Positions 5,101 through 59,447 of a stretch of DNA of 64,000 nucleotides are shown piece by piece. Location: positions 1,612,001 to 1,676,000 of the forward strand of contig OZ251234.1 of the NCBI GenBank assembly GCA_965240325.2. Reading direction: 5' to 3'. Numbering within the stretch: the first letter of the stretch is position 1; each line of letters opens with the position of its first letter. Origin of the DNA: Rebecca billardiae RCC1528 (Eukaryota; Protista; Haptophyta). The notes under the pieces were generated by a model. The model was not told where the DNA came from and did no database searches. It saw nothing but the letters and a program-made list of their open reading frames with translations. A program made the translations under genes and the position numbers.

Positions 5101-8100
5101 CGCTCACCCAGCAGCTCGCGCGCCGCCTCGCCCGGCAGCACGCCGACGGTGAGCCCACTGACCAGCGCCGTGACAGTGCGCTCGACTGCAGAATTGATCG
5201 CAGCGGTCGCCACAGCCTCATCAGCCGCCGCCACTTCGGCCGCCTCATCGGTGTCGGTGTCGGCGCCGGCGCCGGCACCGCTGTCGACGCCGTCCGTCGT
5301 GCCGTCGTCGTCGCCGCCCCCTGAGCTTGCGTCAGCCGCCCTCAGCACGGCATCGAGCCCGCTGACCGAGTTGGCCCCCGTCGTGGCGTCGAGGCCAGAG
5401 TCGTCACGCGCGCCCTCTGCGATGGTGGCGAGCTGCGAGAGCCCTTCGAGCTGCGCGGCCGAGTCGAGCGCGGCTGAGACGGCGAGCACGGCTGAGAGCG
5501 CGTTCGACGTCTGCGCGCGCCCGCCCTCGTCGAGCGCCGAGCCGTTGGCGGCGGTGGCGGTCACGGCCAGCAGCTCGTTGACGACCGCGCGCGCCTCCGT
5601 CGCGTTGCGCTCGGCAATCGCGTCGACGTCCGCGCCTGCGGCCGCGACGATGAGCTGGAGGGCCGCGTCCGTGTCGCCCGCGTCGAGTGCGTCGGACGCG
5701 GCGCCGATGGTCGCGCGTGTGCTCGCGGCTGTCACGTTCTCGCGCGCGGCGGGCACGACGCGCACGCGCGCGGTGGCGGAGGCCACGCCGTCGAACTGGT
5801 CGAGCACGTCGACCGTCGCGTCCAGCTCGCCCTGCGGCAGCACGACCGAAGCACTCGGGTCGAGCGTCGCGGCGGCGGAGACGAACTGCTGCGTGCCGCC
5901 GCCGTCGGCGCCGGGCGCGAGGGTGCGGTACCCAAACCGGTAGCGCAGCGGCAGGTCCTCCGCGTCGTCGTCGGTCCACGCGGCCGCGCTGAGCGCGATC
6001 GGGCTGAGCGCCTCCACCTCGGAGGGCTCGGCGCGCAGCGAGCCACCGTAAGGCGGGCGGTTGATCTCGACCTCTGCGCTCGCCACCGCCGGCCGCGCGC
6101 CGCCCGTCAGCTCCAGCTGTAGCACGTACTTTGCGCCCGGCGTCAGCACGCCGCTGCGGAAGACGAACGAGGGCCGCGCGTCGCCCGTGGTCGTGACGGC
6201 GGTGGCGTCCGCCACGTCGAGCAGCGAGCCGCCGCGCGCGCGCGCAGGCACGCGCAGCTCGCCGACCAGCTCAAAGGCGCGCCAGCGGTATGCGAAGGAG
6301 AGGTTGCCCGCTGTCTGCACGGTGCGCGCGTCCGCGCTGAGCGCGGCGCCGACGCCGACCGCGCTCTCGGGGAGGCTCCACTCGGCGTTGGACTTGGCGC
6401 GCGCGAGCGCGGGCACGTCCACATTCGGGACGTAGTCGTTGACCACCTCCAACGTCACGCGCGCGCTTGCGCTCCGCCCGTCGGCGCTCGAAACCGTCAG
6501 GCCGACGGCGTACGCACCGACGCCGCCGAGCGCGGCCGGCGTGAGCGCGAGCGTCGGGCCGTCGACGGCCACGCCCGCCGCCGCGGCCACGTTGACGGGC
6601 GCGCCGTCCGCCGCTCGCACTACGGCCCATGCGAATGCGAGGCCCGCGCCCGTGCCCACATTCGGGTCGGTGCTCGCCGAGCCGTCAACGAGAAGCGATG
6701 GCGCCGTCACAGAGAGCTCGCGGTCGCCGCCAGCGATCACCGCGCGCACCGGCTGCGACGCGACGACGAGCTGCACGCTCGCGCGCGCGGCTGCGGACGG
6801 TTCGTCGGCCATGCGCGCCGTCACCTCGAGCGTGTACGTGTACTGCGCAGCCAGCGTGTGGGGCGCGAGCTCGAGGGCAGCGCGCGCGCGTGCGGCGGCG
6901 CCAAAGGGCGGCGGAGGCGTCGGGCCGGCGGCGCCGTCCGTGCGCACCGCTCTCACGACGGCCCACGCAAAGTTGACCACTGTGCCGCGCGTCGCGCTCG
7001 GCCAGCACGCGGCGAGCTGCGCGCTCGCCTGCACGACGTTGGGCGCATCGGGGCGCACGGACACCACCGCGGGCCCGCGGATCGCAACGCTCGGCTCGAG
7101 GCCACCCGCGCGCACGACAACGTGCCGCGCGATCGGCGACGACGCGCCGAGGAAGGAGGTAGTCCGTAGCTCAAACACGTACTGCTCGCCGCCCGGCGGG
7201 AGGGTCACGCTGAGCGTCGGCGAGGAGACGCGCTCGACAGCGACGGAGAGCGCGGCGGCGGCGGCGGCGGTGAGCCCGACCGTCGTGTCGATCGACCACG
7301 CGTACGAGAGCGGCACGATCCCGCCGCCGGCCGAGCCGGTGCTGCGCAGCGTCACGCGCTGGTCGGGGCACGCGGACGCGCGCGTTGGGCCGACGATCGA
7401 CGCGCTCGGCGTCGGGCAGCTGCCGACGCACGCGTCCGCGGGCTCGAGCGGGATGGCGACGCCGCCCGACGCGCACAGAACGTCGGGGCACGGCACGCTG
7501 CTCGCGAGCGGGCGCAGCGCGTCCGCGCGCAGCACCACCTCGTCGCCCGGCGCGATGGCCGTGCGCGCGCTCAGCTGCGCGACGAGCGTGCGGTCGTCCG
7601 CCCAGTAGCAACCGGGCGCGGCCGAGGCGGCGCCGCGGATGCGCGCGACCGTCGCGTCGTCGAGCACGACGGTGCACGGCGCGACGCCGCTCATCCCCGC
7701 GCGGTTGGTCGGCTGCGCGTCGAACTCGATCACGAGCGCCGTCGCCGCGCCGTTGAAGCGCGCGCTCAGCAGCGCGGGCGCGTGGAGGCCCTCTGCGTAC
7801 ACAAACGAGCTGGCCCGCGTGGCCGACGCGCCCGCGGGCTGCGCGAACTGCTGGCCGTTGAGCGCGACCGAGACGACGACCGTCGAGTTGGGCACGCCGT
7901 ACGGCGAGCGCACGCGGATGGCGTCGGCCGAGACCGCGAGCGGCGGCGGCGCCTCCACGTCCCCAAAGCGAACGCGCGCCGCCGCGCCCGCAGCCGCCGC
8001 GCCGGCCGCGGTCAGGTTGGTCGCGTTGAGCAGCCCGCCAAAGCCGCTGCCGCTCACCAGCACCTCGTTGCCGCCGCGCGGGTCGCCCTCGCGCGCCGAG

Positions 8101-48962: not shown

Positions 48963-51900
48963 CTAGAAGCCAGGCGGGAAGTTGCTCACCTCCGCCATCT
49001 CGGTGTGCTTCGTGCCGTCGATGGTGCAGTCCACCTTGACCCGCATGACGAGCGGCTTCTGCCCGTGCATCGAGTTGGCGAGCTTGAGGCTCTGCGTGAC
49101 CGAGCCGCCGTTCGAGGGCGGCACCGTCGAGCCCGAGGCCGGCTGCATCATCATCTTCATGTATTTGGGCACGGCCGCCTGGAAGGTGAGCTCGGTGATC
49201 GGCGAGGCCAGCGAGTTGGTGAAGGTCGCCTCGACCGCGGTCACGCTCGGGTTGGCCGCGTCCTTGGACGCGGCGAAACGGATGGTCAGCCCGTGCTTCT
49301 CGAAGGCGACGAAGGTCGCCGGCCCTGCGCAGGGACGGGGAGGGCGGTGCGGTCGGGCGGCGTGCCGCACGCGCGGTGAGGCGGCGCGCCGACCGGCGCG
49401 GCAGGCGCGCGCGGCGCGGCGCGGCGTGGCGCGCGGCGCACGCGCGAGCGCGGCGGCGCGGGGCGGCGCGGCGCGTCGCGGGCGCGCACCGCTCGGCGCG
49501 GCGGGCGTCGGCGCCAGCCCCGGCATCGCGCCCATGGCGGCGAGCGGGTTCGGCTGCGGCGCCCCTCCCATTCCCATCGCGGGCACCGCGGGCGACGGTG
49601 TGGGCGCGGGCGCCGCGGGCGTCGAGTCGCCCAGCAGGTCCATCAGCATGTCTGCTGCGCCAGCGCCGCCGCCCCCGCCGCCGCCGCCGCCGCCCGGCGC
49701 GGCCGCCGGCATCGCAAGGCCGCCCATGCCAGGCTGTGCCTGCGGCGCGCCGCCCGCGGGCGCGGAGGGCGCTCCCATGTCGACCCCGCCGAGAATGTCT
49801 GCAAGCAGGTCCACCTCGCCACCCGCGGGCTTTGGCGGCGCCGCCGCCATCGCGCCGCCGCCACCGCCGCCGCCGCCGCCACGGCCATTTGCTGCGCCCG
49901 CGCCGCGCGCCGCGAGCGGGTCTGCCGCCTTTTGCTTTTTCTCGAGGGCCGGCATGCGCTCGAGCACGCCCTGTCGGATCGAGTCCCACTGGAAGAGGGA
50001 GGAGTACTCGACCGAGCGCTGCTGCATCTCGAGCGCGATCGACGAGCGGTACGGCGCCATCAGCTCGCGCACGCGCGCCTGCACCTCGACGTGCGAGCTG
50101 AATCGAGCGGCGCACTTGACGAGCGCGTTCAGAACGTACTCCTTCGAGGTGATGGTCGAGGTGACGGAGCGGAGCACCGACTCGAGCAGGTCGAGCGCCT
50201 GCGTGGGCGTGAGCGGCTCGCCGCCGTCCGACGCGTCGCCGATCGTGTCCGCGTACTCGCCGATGCACCACACGCCCACCTGCACGAGTGTTTGCTGCGG
50301 AGCGCGGCGCGCGCGCGGTCGCGCGGCGCGGCAGGCAAGGGCCCGGGGCCGCCGCGCGCAGGCGTGCGCGCACGAGGTCAGCCAGACGACGCGCGCACGC
50401 GGGCACGCGGGCGGCGTGCGTGCATGCGCGCGCATGCGCGTGCGCGTGCGTGCATGTGCGCGCGTGCGTGCGCGTGCGCGTGCGCGTGCGTGCGCGTGCG
50501 CGCAGCCCGCCCGCACGCCCGCACGCACCGCGACTGCGTGGAGGTTGCCCTTGAGCGCGCCGTGCAGCTTGCGCGTCGTGTACGACTGGATCTCGGGCGA
50601 CTTGGAGATGAGCGAGATGAGCGAGGACGCGAGGTCGTCCGACACGTAAGCGCTCGACTGTCCACGCCGACGCGGCCGACGCGACGCGCGGCGCGGCCGG
50701 CCGAGGCGGCCGAGGCGGGTGCCCGCAGGTGTGGGCGAGAGAGTGCGCATGTGATCGTCGGTGCCGGCGCGGCGCGCGGCGCGCGGCGCGCGCCCTCCGA
50801 GCGGCGGCGCGGCCCGGCCGCCCGAACCGCGCGCGCGCGGCGCACCATGGTGAGCGTCTTGATGATGGTGTCCACGCGCCACTGCTTGTCCGGCGCGAAC
50901 TGGTCCACCACGTGGCAGATCTTCGTGACCAAGTCCTCCTTGAACTCCGACTCGACCGTCGAGAGGTAGCTCAGCATCTCCGCGACGAGCGGCTCGATGT
51001 TGGACTCGTTGACGAGGACGTAGATGAGCTCGAGGGCCCTCCTGCGCAGCGAGACGTCGGGGTCCTTGAGGCACTCCACGATCGTCGCGCGGTGCCGCTG
51101 CACCGCGTTCACGTCCGAGCCCACCACCGTCACCAGCGTGTTGAGCGCAACGTAACGGATGTTGTTGTCTCGGTTGCCGAGGAAGCGCCCAAGGATGTTG
51201 ATCGCGAGCACGCGCAGCCCGGACTCGGCCTCGATCGCGACGATGGTGAGCACGCACTCGTAGAGGATCGCGTTGCCCACGTTCTTCGACGACTCCGTGT
51301 TCGTCGCGACCTGCGCGAGGATGTCGTTCATCTGGTCCGAGCACTCGGCCGAGTCGGTGCCGAGCACGCGCAGCAGCCGAAGCAGCGCGACCTGCAGGAA
51401 CGGGTCGGTGATGCCGTTGATGTCGTGCTCGGGCGCGTAGCCCGAGAGGACGAGGTTCTTCAGGATGCGCACGAGCGTGGGCACCTGCTTGCGCAGCGGC
51501 TCGATCGTCGTCGCGTCGATCTGCGTCAGCTCGAACATGAGCTTCACGCCCGTGAGCAACACGCCGTGGTTGCGGTCGGACAGGATCGACGCGACTTTGT
51601 CGACGTAGTTCTCGGCGAGCTCGGGGTTCTTCTGCAGGATGCGCACGGCGCAGAGGCACGCCTTCTTGCGCACGTACGGGTTCGAGTTGCCCAGCAGCGT
51701 CTCGATCTCGGGCGAGAGGTCGCGGCAGATCTCCGCCGTCGCGATGTTGGCGAGCGAGCACATGGCCAGCCCGGCAATGTACTGGTTCTGGTTGTGCAGG
51801 TCCCTGCGCGGCCGCGCGGCGGCGGGCGCGGCGGCGGAGGGTGGTGGCGGCGGTGCGCGCGTGAGCGAGGCGCGTGGGCAGTCGCCACGACGCGCGGCGG

Positions 51901-52492
51901 CCCGGCCGCGCGCGCGCGCGCGCGCGTGCGCGGCGCGCTGCCAGGGCGGCGGCGGCGCTGGGCGGCGGGCGGCAACGACGCGTCCACGCGGCGCGGTGCC
52001 GCACATTTTGAGCGAGTTCTCGACCAGCATGAGGACCTCCTGCCGCTCGTCGAGCAGGATCATCAGCCCCAAGTAGCCCACGCGCTTCTCGGGGAACTTG
52101 GTGCCCGCGACGAGCTTGAGGCACTCCATCTGCCCCCAGTGCGTCGGGTAGCCGAGCATGTGGATGAAAAGCAGCTTCGCGACATTGCGGTGGCGCAGCT
52201 CGTTGTTCTCCTCCTTGAAGGCTGTGCGGATGGCGGCGCACTCCTTATGGATGCACGCGCGCTCGTCGGCCTGCGTCTTACACGCGCGCACGTTGCGGAT
52301 GAGCTCCCTGCGCAGCGCGCGGCGAGCCCAGCCAATCCATGGCCGCAAAGAGCGACATCGCGCGAGACGCGGGGCCGAGCGCGGCGCGATCCGGCGTGTG
52401 CGGGCGCGAGTGAGCGGAGAGGTCTGGTGCGCCTCACCAAAAGGCCCTCGCGCGCCGCGCCAGGCGCCCACGCACCGCAGACGGATAGACAT
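48963..52492 (-). CDS. AP1G1: AP-1 complex gamma adaptin, 6 exons
   Basis: MSIRLRELIRNVRACKT..DER, HMLGYPTHWGQMECLKL, EKRVGYLG, DPFLQV, NNIRYVALN, C-terminal gamma-ear FQAAVPKY. Five GT-AG introns join the reading frames. Confidence 0.96.
50395..50505. repeat. Intronic alternating purine-pyrimidine (GCGT/GCGCGT)n repeat
   Basis: gcgtgcgtgcatgcgcgcgcatgcgcgtgcgcgtgcgtgcatgtgcgcgcgtgcgtgcgcgtgcgcg within an AP1G intron. Confidence 0.85.
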
Positions 52493-52718
52493 TGGTACCC
52501 GCCGCCGCCGCCACGGCGCCGCGCCGCCTCGAGAGAGAGTTGGCGAGAGCCGAGCAGCCACAGCGATGGTCACTTGCCAGCGGCCGGACTCAGCGCGGAT
52601 GGCCCCACTTTCCGGACGCTCACAACCCCGCATCCGGGTAAGCGAGTTGGCCGCTTAGGGTGCTCATGGAGGGCACGGCCAGGCGGTTCACTTGATCGCG
52701 CCGCGAGCGTTAGCGTGC

Positions 52719-55086
52719 ATGCCCCAAGGCGGGGGGCGAGTCAGCGTGCGCCCACCGATGGAAGCGCCGCGCCCCGCGGCCGACGCCGAGAAGAGCAGCG
52801 TCCCGTCCGCCGCGCCGCCCGCGCCGATCAGCGCGTGGCAGGGCGCCACGCCCGCCGCCGCCGAGCAGCCGCTCGCGCGAGCGGGCAGCCTCTCGCACAA
52901 GTCCCTCTCGGTGAACGTGGGCAAGGCGGGCTCGAGGGCGCTGGCGGAGGCGCAGACGCCACCGGGCGAGACGCGGCGCATCGTCTCCTTCCGCAGCTCG
53001 AACCACTCGAGCCCCGAGCCGCGCACGCACAGCCCGGGCCAGGAGCGGCCGGAGCGCACGCCGCGCGCGCCGGCCGGCGAGTCGGGCAGCAGCAAGCTCG
53101 CGCGCTGGCTCGCGCAGAAGCGCGCGGCGCGGGAGAACTCGCACGACTGGCACCAGCGCCACGCCAAGCACATCTTCACGCTCAACGTCGGCCTGCGCCT
53201 GTGGAACCGGTGGGCGTCGCTGCTCTCGGCTCTCGGGCTGCTCGCGCAGCTCATTGAGATCGAGTGCTCGATCTTCAATTACGAGGGGTGCAACCAGGCG
53301 GCGCGCACGGCGCTCAAGGCGGTGTGCTCGGCGTTCACGCTCGGCGCGGCGATCTGCCTCACCCAGTTCCACGTCGTGCGCATGCGCTGGCTGCGCGCGC
53401 GCGGCGCGCTCGGCCCGCGCGCCAACTTCCTCTCGTGGCGCGTGCTCAGGCCGTACCTGCTGGAGCTGCTCGTGCTGCTCGTGCACGCGCTGCCGGGCGT
53501 GGACATCTGGGTGGAGCTGAAGGAGGAGCTGCGCGTGCGCCGCTACCCGCTCGACGTCTTCTTCGCCGCGGCGATGCTCATCGGCCGCGCCGCCATCTTC
53601 CTGCCGCGGTACGTCTGGTTCCAGTCGTTGGTGTACAGCCTCGAAGCGTGGGTGCTGGCGGGCGTGGTCGGCGTCGACGTCACGCCGTGGTTCGCGTTCA
53701 AGGTGATGATCTACCTCGCGCCCTTCCAGTTCGTGAGCGCGGGGCTGCTCTTCACGCTGCTCGTCACCGCGTGGGGCGTGCGCGCCTTCGAGCAGTCCGA
53801 CGACACCGACTTTTGTGCGCGCGCGCGCTCGCGCCTTTGTCGGCCCGCGCCGAGCGCGCGCGCCGCAGCGCGCTCGAGCGCCGCGCGCCGCGTGGCAGCG
53901 CGCAGCGCGCCCGCCGCGCGCGCCCCGCTGACGCACGCGCCGCCCTGCCGGGCTGCGCCCGCGCCCCCGCGTCGGCGGCGGCGCCGCGCGCACAGTCGTC
54001 TCCGCCGTGTACTACTCCGTGTACACCGTGCTCGGCGGCAACTACGCGGCGGTCACGCGCGTTGGTCAGGTGTTCACAGTCGCGGGCGGGCTGTCGGGTG
54101 TGTGTCTGGTGTCTCTGCTCACCGCGGCGCTGATCCAGCAGCTCGAGCTCGAGCCGGCGGAGGAGCGGATCGTGGACGCGGTGGTGGGCAACTCGATCCG
54201 CAAGGACATGCTGCACGCGCAGATCTCGCTCATCCAGTGGTCGTGGCGCCGCCACTTTGTGCAGCGGCTTGAGCTTGAACCGGAGCTGCGCGCGCGCTGG
54301 GCGATCATCGAAGCCTCGGCCATGCCGCCGGGGATGCAGCCGCGCGCGTTCCTCGGCCGCCGGCTGCCGTCGGCGCGCTCGACGCTGAGCATGGCGCAGG
54401 CGGTGACGCTGAGCCCGAAGAAGCGCTCCTCCTCCAAGCGCACCACGCGCGCCTCCGTCTCCTCCGCCGCGGTGCGCGGCGTGACGCAGGGCATGGACAC
54501 CTACGCTTTCATGCGGCTGCCGCTGTCCGCCAAGGATGTGCAGGCGACGCGCTACTACACGTTCTATCTGGGCGAGTTCCGCCGGCTGCGGCGCACGCTG
54601 AAGGGGATGCACACGACGCGCGGCGGGCTGGGCGGCGGCGGCGAGGCGCTGCCGCTGCGCCCCGCTGCGGCGCGCGACGGCCGCGACGCCGAGCTGGATA
54701 CGCTGCGCGCCGAGCTGGCCACCGTTGTCGCGTCCGTGCACCAGCTGAGCACGGATTTGCATGTCGCGCTCAAGATGATCGGCAGGCAGTCGAAGGCGCT
54801 GACGAGGGCGCTGGGCGTGGACGACGCGACGGTGGAGGAGTCGCTGCAGCGCGCCGCGCCGATCCGCCGCGCGTACCACGCGCAGCGCTCGCCGCGCCCG
54901 TCGCACGAGGCGGGCGGCGCGCCTGCCGCGCCCGCCGCTGACGCCCCCGCGCCGCCGGGTGCGGTGCGCAGCAGCGCCGACGGCGCGGCGGGCCCCGGCC
55001 CAAGCCGCCAACGTGGTCGGGGCTCGCACGCCGCCGGCGAGCGTGGCTCGGCGTCGTCTGCGCGCAGTGTCGAATCGCTCAGATAG
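52719..55086 (+). CDS. SK/KCNN-like (small-conductance Ca-activated K channel-like) protein with non-canonical pore loop
   Basis: SK-like helices (ASLLSALGLLAQLIEIE; LKAVCSAFTL; LLELLVLLVH; WFAFKVMI; LVTAWGVRAFE; GVCLVSLLTAALIQQLEL..AE). Intron 53815-53995 restores the frame. C-terminal coiled coil. Confidence 0.82.
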
Positions 55087-55258
55087 GGGCTGGCCCGCCG
55101 GCAACAGCAGCTAGACACTCCGCAGCCGGGTTCGTCAAGTTAGTTCGCAGTGGCCTCTTCCGCGTGCACCTGGCCAGTCTGGCAGCTTCGCGAAAAAGTA
55201 CCGGGCGGGCGGAGCCACCGGACGTCAAGTCAAGCCTTCCGCCGCCCGCGCGCGTCCA

Positions 55259-58200
55259 ATGGACGACGAGTTTGCCGCGCTCACGCGGCGCCTGGGCGCC
55301 TCGACGGATCCGTACGAGCAGGGCGAGGTGGCGAACGCGGTGTACGACGCGTGGTTCAAGCGCGCCGCCGCGTACGCCAAATCCGTCGGCAGTGCCGCGC
55401 AGCTCGGCCCGCGCGACGCGGTCCGTGAGATAGCGGCCGCCACGCGCGCGGCGCTCAGCGTGCTCTCGGGCGGCGACGCGGAGCCGAGCGTGCTGCTCGA
55501 GGCGGACGACTTCGTCGCGAACTCGCTCCTCGAGGCCTTCGCCAAGGTGCTCTCCCTGCTGCGCACCAAGCCCAAGTTCTTGCACGTGAGCGCGAGCGCG
55601 GACGGCGCCCCGCTGACGGACTGGCTCGAGGGCGCAGCGCTGCGCCGGCTGGAGGGCGTGGCGTACGCACCGCACGCGCGCTCGACGAATCGGACGGCTG
55701 CGCTGCGCGCGCTCGTCCCGCTCCTCGAGCTCGGCGCGGCCGTGCGCGAGCAGCGCGCGGCGGGCGCGGCGGGCGCGGCGGGCGCGGCGCTGGCCGCCAG
55801 CTCGGCGCGCGGCATCGACCTTCGACTCGAGCCGCTGGTGGCGCTCGCGCTGGGCGCGTCGAGCGAGTACATGCTCGTGCAGGCGGCGCTCGAGCTGCTC
55901 CGCGCGCACGCGCGCCTCCTCGACGCCGCGCCCGCCGGCGCGGACGCCTCCGCGCGCGAGCGACTGCTGACGCTCGTCGCGCGTGCTCTCACGCCCACTG
56001 ACGACGCTGGCGGTGTGCTGCGCCTCTTCTGGTCGCTGCGCGCGCTCGAGTCGGAGGCGGCGGTGCGCGAGCTGGTCGCGCGGCTCGACGCCGAGCGCGG
56101 GCCGTCCGCCGCCAACTCCGCCGCCAACTCCGCCGAGCTCGCGCAGATTGCCGGCACGCGAGCGCTCGATGGGTCGCGCGGCGCGCCCGCGCCGCGCTCG
56201 CTCGCGCGCGCCGTCCTCGAGTCTCTGAACGAGTACGCGCGCGACGTGGAGACGGAGCTGAGCGCGCGCGAGGCCGAGCGTACGCGCGCGCACCTGTGCC
56301 AGCTGCTCGACGTCTCGTGCGCGGCGGTCCATCGCCACGCCACGGGCACGGCGGCGGCGAGCGGCGGCGGCGGCGGCGGCTTGCTGGCCGCTGCGACGAG
56401 CGCCGCGCGCGCCGCGCTTGGCGGTGGCGCGCGCGGCTCGGAGGAGGGGCTGGGCGCGGAGTACGAGCACCCGGCCGTGGCGCTCGAGCTGCTTGACGCG
56501 CTGCTGCTCGCGACCGCCGGCTCGCCCGACGCCTGCGCGCCCTTCCTCGCGTGGGCGCTCGACGCGCGCGCGCGCACGCCCGGCACGCTCGGCTGCGTCT
56601 CAGGCGGGCCGGTGCGTTTGTACCGCGCGCGTGTGTGGCTGGAGCGGCTGCTGCCGTTCGTCGAGGCTCGGCTGGTGCGCATGTCGCTGCACGGCGTGTC
56701 GGGCGACCAGTCCGAGCAGGCCGTCGTCGACCTGCTCCACGACGGCGTGCGCGCGTGGTACTCGGGCCACGGCGGGACGGCAGGCTCGGCGTCCGCGGCC
56801 GCGCCGAGCGCCGCGCTCGGCGCGGCGCTGGTGCACGCGATGCTGGAGGCGATGCGCCGCGGGTACGTGGAGACGGAGCGCTTCCCGATGTACGCGGCGA
56901 TCGTGATCGGCGCGCACGCCTCGAGCGGCTCGCTCGCCTGGCTCGGCGCCGCGCTCTCCCCCGAGGTCTGCCACACGCACAAGGTGACGCGTGCGGTGAC
57001 TGAGGTGGCGCTTCGACTGCTCGGCGCGAGCGTCGTCGGCGACGTTGACGACTCGCGCGTCGGCGTGGTGAGCGCGGCGCAGCGGGCGGAGGTGCTGCGC
57101 GTGGTCGCGACGGCGGGCTCGGCCGCCGGCTTCGCCACGCTCGCGCAGCTCGCCAAGGCCGACGCCGCCCTCCTCCTCGGCATCGACGGCGGGCTGCAAG
57201 TGGCCGTCGCGGGCGCTGACGCGCGGCTGCGCGCGATGGCTAAGGTGCAGCAGCGCTGGACGGCTGAGCTCGACGCGATGAGCGACTTCTTCACGGCGCT
57301 CGCGCCGCACGCGTCGGCGGAGGACGCGGTCACGCTGCTCGACGCGTGGCTCCGCGCCGCCGCCGTCGCCCTCCGCGCCCCCGACGACGACGTCTTCGCT
57401 TCGCTGCTGCAGCGCGCGCCCACCGCCGCGCCGCCGCCGCTTGCCCTTGCGGTCGAGGCACTGCGCGTGTGCGGCGAGCACACGCGCTGCGCGATCGCCG
57501 CGCTGTACCCGACGCTCTGCCTCGCGGACTCGAGCTCGACCGTGCGCGCCGCCGCCCTCTCCGCCCTCGCCGGCTTCCCCGCCCTCGTCCAGCAGCACGC
57601 GGTGCGCGCACGCCGCGGCCGAGCGCGCGCGTGGCGCGAGCGCACCGCCGCGCGCGTGCGCGCGCGCGCCGCGCTGCACACAACCCCGTCGGCGCCCCGC
57701 GCCACGCGGCGGCGTGCGCGTGCGAGCTCATCTGCCTGCCTCTCCTTCTCTCTGTGCGTGCGCGCGCGCGCGCGCGCGTACGCCGGCGCGTGTGCCGCGC
57801 GCAGGCGCTTGTCCTCAGCGCGACCGAGACGCCGAGCTCGCGCGCGCGCGACTGGTCCGGCTGTCCCCGCGAGTGTCGGCTTGACGAGCTTGAACTGGCA
57901 CTCGCCGGCGCGCCGTCGCTCGGTTTGCTGGGGGCGACGCACGCGGCGGCGCTGCCGGCCGCGCTCTCGCGCCTCGCGTCGTACGTCGCGCTCACCGCGC
58001 TCAACGACGCGCAGAGCGCGCCGGCCGACGTCGTGCTCGACGCCCTGCGCCGCGTCGCGTGCGAAGCCGACCCCGCTGCTTTGGGCGAGCACCTTCGCAC
58101 CGCCGCGGGCGCGAGGGACCTTGGTGAGATCGGCCGAGGGCTGGCTGAGTGGCCTGCGCTCGCGCGCGCGCGCGCCGCGGCCGCGGCCGAGCACGCGCGC

Positions 58201-59447
58201 ACCACGCAGCCGCTGCTGGCGCACAGCACGCCCGTCGCGCTCGGCACGCCTGTCGCCATCGCCGCCCCGCTCGGCCGCGCGGCCGAGCCGGCCGCGCCGA
58301 GCGCCGCCGCCAAGGCGCAGGTGACCTCTGCGGGCACGGCCTCCGCGGCCGCCGAGCCGGCGCTCAAGCAGCGGCCGGCCGTGGCTTCCAGCGCGCCCGC
58401 GCTCGCGGCGAGCGCGGGCGCGCGCGGCGCGCCGGCGGACGAGCGCGCGCGGTCGCTTCTCGATGAGGCGCGCGCGTTCGCGCAGGCCGGGCAGCCCGTG
58501 GCGGCGATGCGGTCGTGTGCGCGCGCGCGCGCCACCGACGCCTCCGCCTTCGCGCTCGGCGGCGGCGCCGAGCTCGTGAGCGGCACCGTGCTCCCAGCGC
58601 TCCGCGACACGTGCCTGCCAGCGCCCGCGCCCGCCGCGGCCGCCGCGAGCGCACGCGGGAAGCCCGGCACCGTCCCGGCCTACAGCGAATCTCAGCTGGC
58701 GAGATACGATGCGCACGTGTCTCTCTTGCGAGAGGCGCGGGCGCTCTTCCCGGCGGAGGCGGAGGCGGTGCTGCAGCCGGCGGCGCGGATGGCGGACCTC
58801 GCCGCGGCCGCGGTGGAGCACAAGCTCGCTCGGGGCGACGCGGCCGGCGCGCGGCTGTGGATGACCAAGAAGGGCGTGCACGCGCCCAGCCTTGCGGCGC
58901 GCGTGGCCGAGGCCGAGCGCGGCGCCGCGCCAGAGGCGGCGGCGCCTCGAGCCGCCGCACCCAACGCTGCCGCCGCGAGCGCCGCGAGCGCTCTTGCCTC
59001 GGCCGCGTCGGCGACCGCGCGCGCCGTGCGCAACGCCACGGCGGCGCGGCCGCGCGCGCAGGGCCCTCCGGAGTACGCGCAGCTGTCGTCGCTCGAGGAC
59101 ATGCTGCTCGCGCTGCCGCCTGTGCCGCCGGACGCGCCGGCCAGCGTCAGCGCGGGCCCTGCGCGCGCGAGCACGCGCGCGCCGAGCCGATGGTGCGCGC
59201 GCGCGCCGTGCTCCGCCGGCGCACGCGTCGTCACCGCCAATGCTGCGACTCGCACGCGACAAGCCCACAGCAGCGCTCACCCCTGCGCGCCCGCGCGCCG
59301 CCGCACTGTGCCCGCGACCCCAGGGCGGCTGTCGAGCCGGCTGCGCCCAGGGCGCAATTGCCACCGCTGAGCGCGGCGGCATTGCCACGGCGGCTTGAGC
59401 CCGGGGAGGAGTCGACGGACGCCGAGTCAGGCCCCCTGCTCGCCTGA
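55259..59447 (+). CDS. Hypothetical large alpha-helical (ARM/HEAT-like) protein, spliced
   Basis: Coding-like ORF from MDDEFAALTRRL. Intron ~57602-57804 (GT...GCAG) joins to ALVLSATETP. Last exon and stop uncertain (59398 or 59447). Confidence 0.6.

Follow-up and report, generated by a model that had tools for sequence, protein, structure and literature searches.

A two-exon gene with SK/IK layout in Rebecca billardiae

We analyzed a window of 64,000 nucleotides from the haptophyte Rebecca billardiae RCC1528 (GCA_965240325.2, contig OZ251234.1, positions 1,612,001 to 1,676,000 of the forward strand; all coordinates below count from the first letter of this window), and within it a two-exon gene at 52719 to 55086 on the + strand, which comprises 728 codons. 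The encoded protein has the layout of SK/IK (KCNN) channels, with segments S1 to S6, a long S4-S5 linker, a region resembling helices HA and HB after S6, and a conserved C-terminal helix, and the pore loop between S5 and S6 is degenerate at the place of the K+ selectivity filter.

Exon 1 (52719 to 53814, +) starts at the first in-frame ATG of frame 0, which is open from 52692, and it encodes a low-complexity N-terminus, S1 to S4, the S4-S5 linker, S5, and an acidic turret, including five of the six hydrophobic segments. The alignment of this exon to a transcript from Pavlovales sp. CCMP2436, the source of the relative described below, covers segment A and the beginning of segment B of that transcript. 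Similarity to that relative begins, in a pairwise alignment with the transcript contig L001, at a conserved cytoplasmic segment ahead of S1 (53091 to 53207, +). A probable four-helix S1-S4 domain of the SK type follows (53220 to 53603, +), as indicated by hydropathy, the Pfam SK_channel profile, and the structural matches of a low-confidence model, and its S4 carries two arginines only, seven residues apart. The long S4-S5 linker (53604 to 53696, +) includes an 11-residue stretch that is identical in the relative, and its length appears to match that of SK2, which is a lead only. S5 (53697 to 53795, +) ends in T-A-W-G-x-R-A-F-E-Q and was aligned to S5 of human SK4 in a profile search.

The exons are separated by a predicted phase 1 intron of 181 nt (53815 to 53995, +; GTGCGC...GCACAG; ~79% G+C), which was placed by the break and resumption of homology and by its GT/AG borders. 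Homology to the relative ends in frame 0 at 53813 and restarts in frame 1 at 53998; the GT at 53815 is the first frame-restoring donor past the end of homology, the AG lies at 53994 to 53995, and later in-frame GT or GC donors would merely add or change a few turret residues. We treat 53814/53996 as a predicted junction. The neighboring AP-1 gamma-like gene contains an intron that matches this one in size and style (GTGCGG...GCGCAG).

Exon 2 (53996 to 55086, +) encodes the pore helix, the degenerate filter, S6, HA, a variable linker, an HB-like helix, the C-terminal helix, and a low-complexity tail, and it ends with a TAG stop codon. The S6 inner helix (54064 to 54141, +) aligned to S6 of SK4 without gaps. 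The post-S6 helix, which we named HA (54142 to 54270, +), was aligned to SK4 residues ~289 to 326, starts with L-E-L, retains the conserved Trp, and is nearly identical in the CCMP2436 relative. Beyond an unconstrained HA-HB linker of low identity (54271 to 54516, +) lies an amphipathic basic helix (Y-x-F-Y-L-G-E-F-R-x-L-R-R-x-L-K; 54517 to 54606, +), which is conserved in the relative, is helical in the relative's model, and would be the counterpart of SK helix HB. The conserved C-terminal helix (54688 to 54813, +) has conserved counterparts in segment C of the CCMP2436 transcript and in the proteins P0003, P0007, and P0008, and it may be a coiled coil of the kind formed by SK helix HC.

Upstream, an AP-1 gamma-adaptin-like gene on the - strand (48963 to 52400) lies head to head with the channel gene. 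Because its start is only ~400 nt away, an additional upstream 5′ exon of the channel gene is unlikely. The gap between the two starts is a possible bidirectional promoter, and the GC-rich introns of the AP-1 gamma-like gene, of ~190 nt, are open in frame on read-through. Downstream, a long open frame on the + strand (55259 to 58324 and beyond) begins ~170 nt past the stop codon of the channel gene. The G+C content of the window is 70 to 80%, matching the 73% of Diacronema lutheri (PMC8379373).

Placement of the protein in the SK/IK superfamily

Searches and folds were run exon by exon, or on the natural contiguous protein of the relative. The Pfam profile SK_channel (PF03530) matched exon 1 over profile positions 16 to 113 with an E value of 2.6e-5 and 24.6 bits, and it matched the N-terminal half of the relative over the same positions with an E value of 0.007 and 16.8 bits, both scores falling below the gathering cut-off of 31.8 bits. 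For exon 2, the best sequence match in the PDB was human KCa3.1/SK4 (phmmer, E = 5e-4). When the two species were combined into a profile, SK4 was found at an E value of 1e-4 (residues 166 to 300 and 192 to 328), the alignment spanning S5, the pore, S6, and HA, and hhalign of this profile against five canonical protist SK-like pores gave a probability of 97.5% (E = 6e-12). Thus, S5, the pore helix, and S6 are collinear with those of SK channels, and the claim of the initial annotation that the segments flanking the pore are SK-like was borne out by their collinearity with human SK4 in the two-species profile search. Pfam Ion_trans_2 reached only 15.3 bits in the R. billardiae protein and did not match the CCMP2436 relative, and S1-S5 found no sequence match in the PDB, either alone or as a two-sequence profile.

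Structural comparison pointed to the same family. The AlphaFold2 (AF2) model of S1-S5 has low confidence, with a predicted local distance difference test score (pLDDT) of 58; its top 17 PDB matches were all SK2 or SK4 (TMq 0.54 to 0.65), and the matches after these were mostly G protein-coupled receptors with scores of <0.33. The AF2 model of the relative's part from S5 to HB (pLDDT 67) retrieved SK4/calmodulin first, and NaK-family pores made up most of the next matches. Neighbors in the ESM Atlas bear SK_channel, Ion_trans_2, and CaMBD. The Pfam, PDB sequence, profile, hhalign, AF2, and ESM Atlas results together place the protein in the SK/IK superfamily, of which it is a very divergent member, ~20% identical to the human channels, with a resemblance to SK that exceeds chance.

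Loss of the K+ selectivity signature

The pore region (54010 to 54069, +) translates into exactly the 20 residues quoted in the initial annotation and sits inside an open reading frame (ORF) of 359 codons (54007 to 55086, +). The ORF recurred, with an identical pore, in contigs from two independent Logan read sets of this organism, namely, L004 (ERR14847148), which matches the window at 100% identity across 3875 nt, and L005 (ERR14847151), which is 99.4% identical and represents another haplotype or strain; an assembly error is therefore excluded. The loss of the K+ signature, as first proposed, was confirmed, since TxGYGD is absent from the pore loop. Moreover, no G[YFLM]G motif was found in any + frame of 52600 to 55200, save one within a glycine run at 54625. 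Where an SK/IK channel is expected to carry T/S-x-G-Y-G-D, we found G-G-N-Y-A-A (or T-V-L-G-G-N) and a deletion of 3 residues.

The pore helix (53996 to 54024, +) was delimited by MAFFT, hmmsearch, and hhalign alignments and by a helix at the equivalent residues 44 to 56 in the relative's model, and the degenerate filter loop (54025 to 54063, +) was delimited by the alignments. MAFFT, the SK4 profile search, and hhalign all set G-G-N-Y-A-A (54034 to 54051) opposite T-[VI]-G-Y-G-D. A loop about three residues shorter than that of SK channels had also been proposed, and all three methods indeed opened a 3-residue gap directly after the Tyr (hhalign probability, 97.5%). Three of the four alignment methods thus agree on the gapped register; the fourth, a local single-sequence phmmer alignment that leaves the pore helix outside, gave an ungapped register with T-V-L-G-G-N (54025 to 54042) opposite T-I-G-Y-G-D.

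In the gapped alignments, the Tyr of GYG is retained in both species. The second Gly and the Asp are absent from both under either register, and R. billardiae lacks the first Gly as well. The position of the conserved pore-helix Trp is occupied by Tyr in R. billardiae and by Trp in the CCMP2436 relative. Residues for the upper ion sites are absent from the R. billardiae loop in both registers. In the modeled monomer of the relative, just 8 loop residues lie between the pore helix (44 to 56) and S6. We conclude that the protein is very probably an SK-family member without a K+ filter.

Relatives and their filters

An exhaustive HMMER search with exon 2 against 1.84 billion protein representatives (E ≤ 0.001; sensitivity limited to ~39 bits or more) returned six proteins only, namely, the ORF itself, two pieces of a CCMP2436 gene (P0002 and P0003), a fragment (P0005), and two tandem SK-like proteins (P0004 and P0006). 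The sole close relative is the Pavlovales sp. CCMP2436 protein, the species name being that given by NCBI on P0003. When exon 2 or the relative served as the query, word searches retrieved only these two proteins themselves, a word search with the S1-S5 part retrieved no match, and neither did two metagenome-contig scans with alignments. A tblastx comparison of the window's neighboring genes with the CCMP2436 locus (L003) revealed no shared neighbors; orthology therefore rests on the two proteins being mutual only close matches.

The initial annotation would have been contradicted by orthologues with a canonical filter, and the only orthologue-like relative also lacks one. At the filter the relative has S-L-G-Y-T-A, again followed by the 3-residue gap, and this sequence is seen in the JGI transcript contigs L001 and L002, in the MMETSP ORF P0007, and in the NCBI genome (L003), whose coverage of the pore reaches an N gap starting just past it. 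Genome and transcripts of CCMP2436 place S5, the pore, S6, and HA within one exon, such that no hidden exon is possible there. The relative does not have the intron found at 53815 to 53995 in R. billardiae, and its protein is collinear with the R. billardiae model except for a length difference of 4 residues in the stretch from turret to pore.

The next relatives, P0004 and P0006, showed 24 to 28% identity (E values of 2e-6 to 8e-5 among the 1.84 billion proteins). P0004 (1246 aa), from the kinetoplastid Apiculatamorpha spiralis, comprises three SK-like channel units in one chain, and P0006 (1399 aa), from a Logan assembly, comprises two. All five of these pores read canonical [TS]-[VL]-G-Y-G-D. 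The concatenation of units in tandem is itself an unusual layout for the SK family.

Several features of the CCMP2436 gene emerged alongside, in L001 and at 6195 to 6715 of L003. The JGI transcript contigs keep two introns (~1040 to 1578 and ~2388 to 2534 of L001) while five others are spliced out, and the second retained intron is absent from the MMETSP ORF P0007 and from the NCBI model P0003. The NCBI annotation of the gene is a partial fragment of 84 residues, and genomic N gaps lie inside the gene. The first retained intron, which is AT rich, contains at 1063 to 1441 of L001 three degenerate copies (68 to 81% identity) of the first 47 nt of the next, S5-coding segment (1620 to 1666), followed by an AAT/AAG-rich microsatellite; these copies resemble pseudo-exon duplications within an intron.

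Constraint on the channel core

Identity between the two species varied strongly along the protein, amounting to 28% in the N-terminus, 50% from S1 to the S4-S5 linker, 64% in S5, ~25% in the pore segment (6 of 24 positions, ungapped), 75% in S6-HA, and 31% in the HA-HB linker. The ratio of nonsynonymous to synonymous divergence (dN/dS) was 0.21 for S5, 0.15 for S6-HA, and ~1.1 for the HA-HB linker, and these ratios are rough, as dS is near saturation. The HB-like helix and the C-terminal helix have conserved cores, and both species retain the acidic residues that precede the pore helix. This pattern points to purifying selection on the parts of the gene that would serve assembly and gating.

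Variation within the species was examined by comparing L005 with positions 53844 to 55783 of the window, and the 99.4% identity between them reflects 6 mismatches plus 5 gapped positions across 1.9 kb. Within exon 2, the differences are a synonymous one in the pore loop (54060) and two nonsynonymous ones (M to L at 54322 and H to L at 55028), both of the latter being in low-complexity linkers.

A possible non-selective pore and its alternatives

In SK channels, the post-S6 helices hold calmodulin and pull the gate open. It is established that four contiguous carbonyl sites provided by TxGYG confer K+ selectivity (PMC9822992), whereas the TVGDGN filter of NaK retains just sites S3 and S4, and NaK is non-selective (PMC9822992; PMC3082925). 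Lacking the second Gly and the Asp and being three residues shorter, the R. billardiae loop should be unable to form the upper sites and hence the four stacked carbonyl sites of a K+-selective pore. The reading we favor, with a probability of about 0.45, is that the locus is a genuine pavlovophyte haptophyte gene with an intact frame, and that its product, a divergent member of the SK/IK (KCNN-like) family of 6-TM tetrameric channels, has lost the K+ selectivity signature and conducts non-selectively. The protein would form a tetrameric pore, which would open by way of an SK-type cytoplasmic gating apparatus (Ca2+/calmodulin), as the similarity of the helices suggests. The short filter would keep the lower ion sites at most, monovalent cations would pass without K+ preference, as in NaK and CNG channels, and opening of the channel would depolarize the cell instead of hyperpolarizing it. 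The CCMP2436 relative may keep the lower sites through S-L-G-Y, and in R. billardiae they would be kept only under the ungapped register (T-V). That the pore conducts cations non-selectively is, taken as a separate step and judged from the sequence, a tentative proposition, and that an SK gating machine has been turned into a Ca2+-activated non-selective cation channel in pavlovophyte algae is a more speculative one.

The initial annotation had suggested a non-selective or otherwise novel channel or a modulatory subunit, and both a conducting non-selective pore and a non-conducting subunit are candidates here. A number of observations weigh against such a pore. In the gapped register, the Thr and Val of the lower sites are also lost from R. 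billardiae. The filter loop is the least conserved portion of the membrane core, and a newly tuned filter would explain its divergence no better than relaxed constraint does; the drift looks more like relaxed constraint because known non-selective families, namely, CNG, HCN, and NaK, conserve their filters. The case comprises just two species with an unconserved filter, which makes a finely tuned new selectivity less likely. Further, Pfam CaMBD (PF02888) was not detected in the R. billardiae protein at E ≤ 1, which leaves calmodulin gating to helix similarity, and the structural models are exon-wise monomers of low to moderate confidence.

The close and strongest rival is a non-conducting SK-like subunit with a dead pore, which would act as a silent or regulatory partner of canonical subunits or else serve as a calmodulin-binding sensor or scaffold anchored in the membrane, and we consider it a possible, if doubtful, explanation. 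It would account for a filter loop that drifts freely (~25% identity, with nearly every filter position different between the species) amid conserved S5, S6, HA, HB, and C-terminal helices, and for the preferred register, which leaves no Thr or Val at the filter base in R. billardiae. However, the six matches of the exhaustive search (at its limit of ~39 bits or more) include no canonical SK-like paralogue from a pavlovophyte that could serve as a partner; the pore-lining S6 is among the best conserved parts, and both species have kept the acidic residues before the pore helix. A channel that is still K+ selective, with an unorthodox filter, is improbable: both species preserve the Tyr of GYG, with S-L-G-Y still present in the relative, but the second Gly and the Asp are gone from both, the first Gly is gone from R. 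billardiae, the loop is 3 residues short, and K+ selectivity is tied to four contiguous sites (PMC9822992).

Explanations that deny the gene or its pore fared worst. A missed exon, another splice, or a sequencing error that masks a canonical filter is highly improbable. The splice at 53815/53995 is a prediction from sequence in R. billardiae and the relative is without this intron, but the relative's S5, pore, and S6 stand in one uninterrupted exon and are collinear save for the 4 turret-to-pore residues, the R. billardiae pore lies downstream of the sole plausible acceptor, and its sequence recurs in two further read sets. An exon supplying GYGD, the finding that would have overturned the initial annotation, was found neither in the + frames of the locus, which hold no GYG-type motif apart from the glycine run, nor in the single-exon pore of CCMP2436, and the hidden-exon reading was rejected on these grounds. 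Decay into a pseudogene would explain the loss of the defining motif and the fast evolution of the linkers, but both species have an open frame, of 728 codons in R. billardiae, dN/dS of the core is 0.15 to 0.21, and the relative's gene is transcribed and spliced; together with the differences within the species (one synonymous and two nonsynonymous in exon 2, the latter confined to low-complexity linkers), these data led us to reject a pseudogene, which is just as remote a prospect as a faulty gene model.

To our knowledge, all SK/IK channels characterized to date are K+ selective. Their physiology, in which a rise in Ca2+ leads to hyperpolarization, rests on that selectivity. Our searches of the open-access literature brought up no publication dealing with SK-like channels of haptophytes or algae, or with SK members without the K+ signature, a scope that does not amount to proof. 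If the non-selective reading were true, a rise in Ca2+ would depolarize rather than hyperpolarize the cell, and the protein would be the first SK/IK member whose pore is not a K+ pore, in natural analogy to the step from the Kv-type to the CNG/HCN-type filter. A gating apparatus under purifying selection with the filter discarded would represent either a natural experiment in which selectivity is re-tuned on the SK scaffold or the first SK subunit with a dead pore. In both cases, it would shed light on the evolution of P-loop filters and the wiring of Ca2+ signaling in haptophytes, whose membrane physiology is little known.

Comparison with known systems

Human KCa3.1 (SK4/IK; PDB 6CNM) and KCa2.2 (SK2), the best PDB matches in sequence and structure, share with the R. 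billardiae protein a long S4-S5 linker and, probably, their S1-S4 domain, which is without the charge ladder of a voltage sensor, and SK4 further shares the collinear S5, pore helix, and S6, the L-E-L at the start of HA, and the conserved Trp of HA. Unlike SK4 and SK2, the R. billardiae protein is without T-x-G-Y-G-D, its post-filter loop is 3 residues shorter, its turret is shorter, and it carries an insertion of ~80 residues between HA and HB. The protist tandem proteins P0004 and P0006 have in common with it the S-L-L-T-A motif in S6 and the I-Q-x-x-W-R motif in HA, whereas they are multi-unit proteins with GYGD and a full-length loop and the R. billardiae protein is a single unit.

The likeness to NaK and CNG channels would lie in P-loop pores that depart from TVGYG and have fewer than four ion sites. 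NaK-family pores were the best structural matches after SK4 for the relative's pore module (TMt ~0.62), and T-V-L-G-G-N in the ungapped register resembles T-V-G-D-G-N of NaK. These channels are, however, related to the R. billardiae protein by a common pore fold only, and their filters are conserved, whereas this filter differs between its two known members. The electrically silent Kv subunits (Kv5, Kv6, Kv8, and Kv9), which are non-conducting alone and modify their partners, offer a conceptual parallel, and they retain the GYG signature that the R. billardiae protein has lost.

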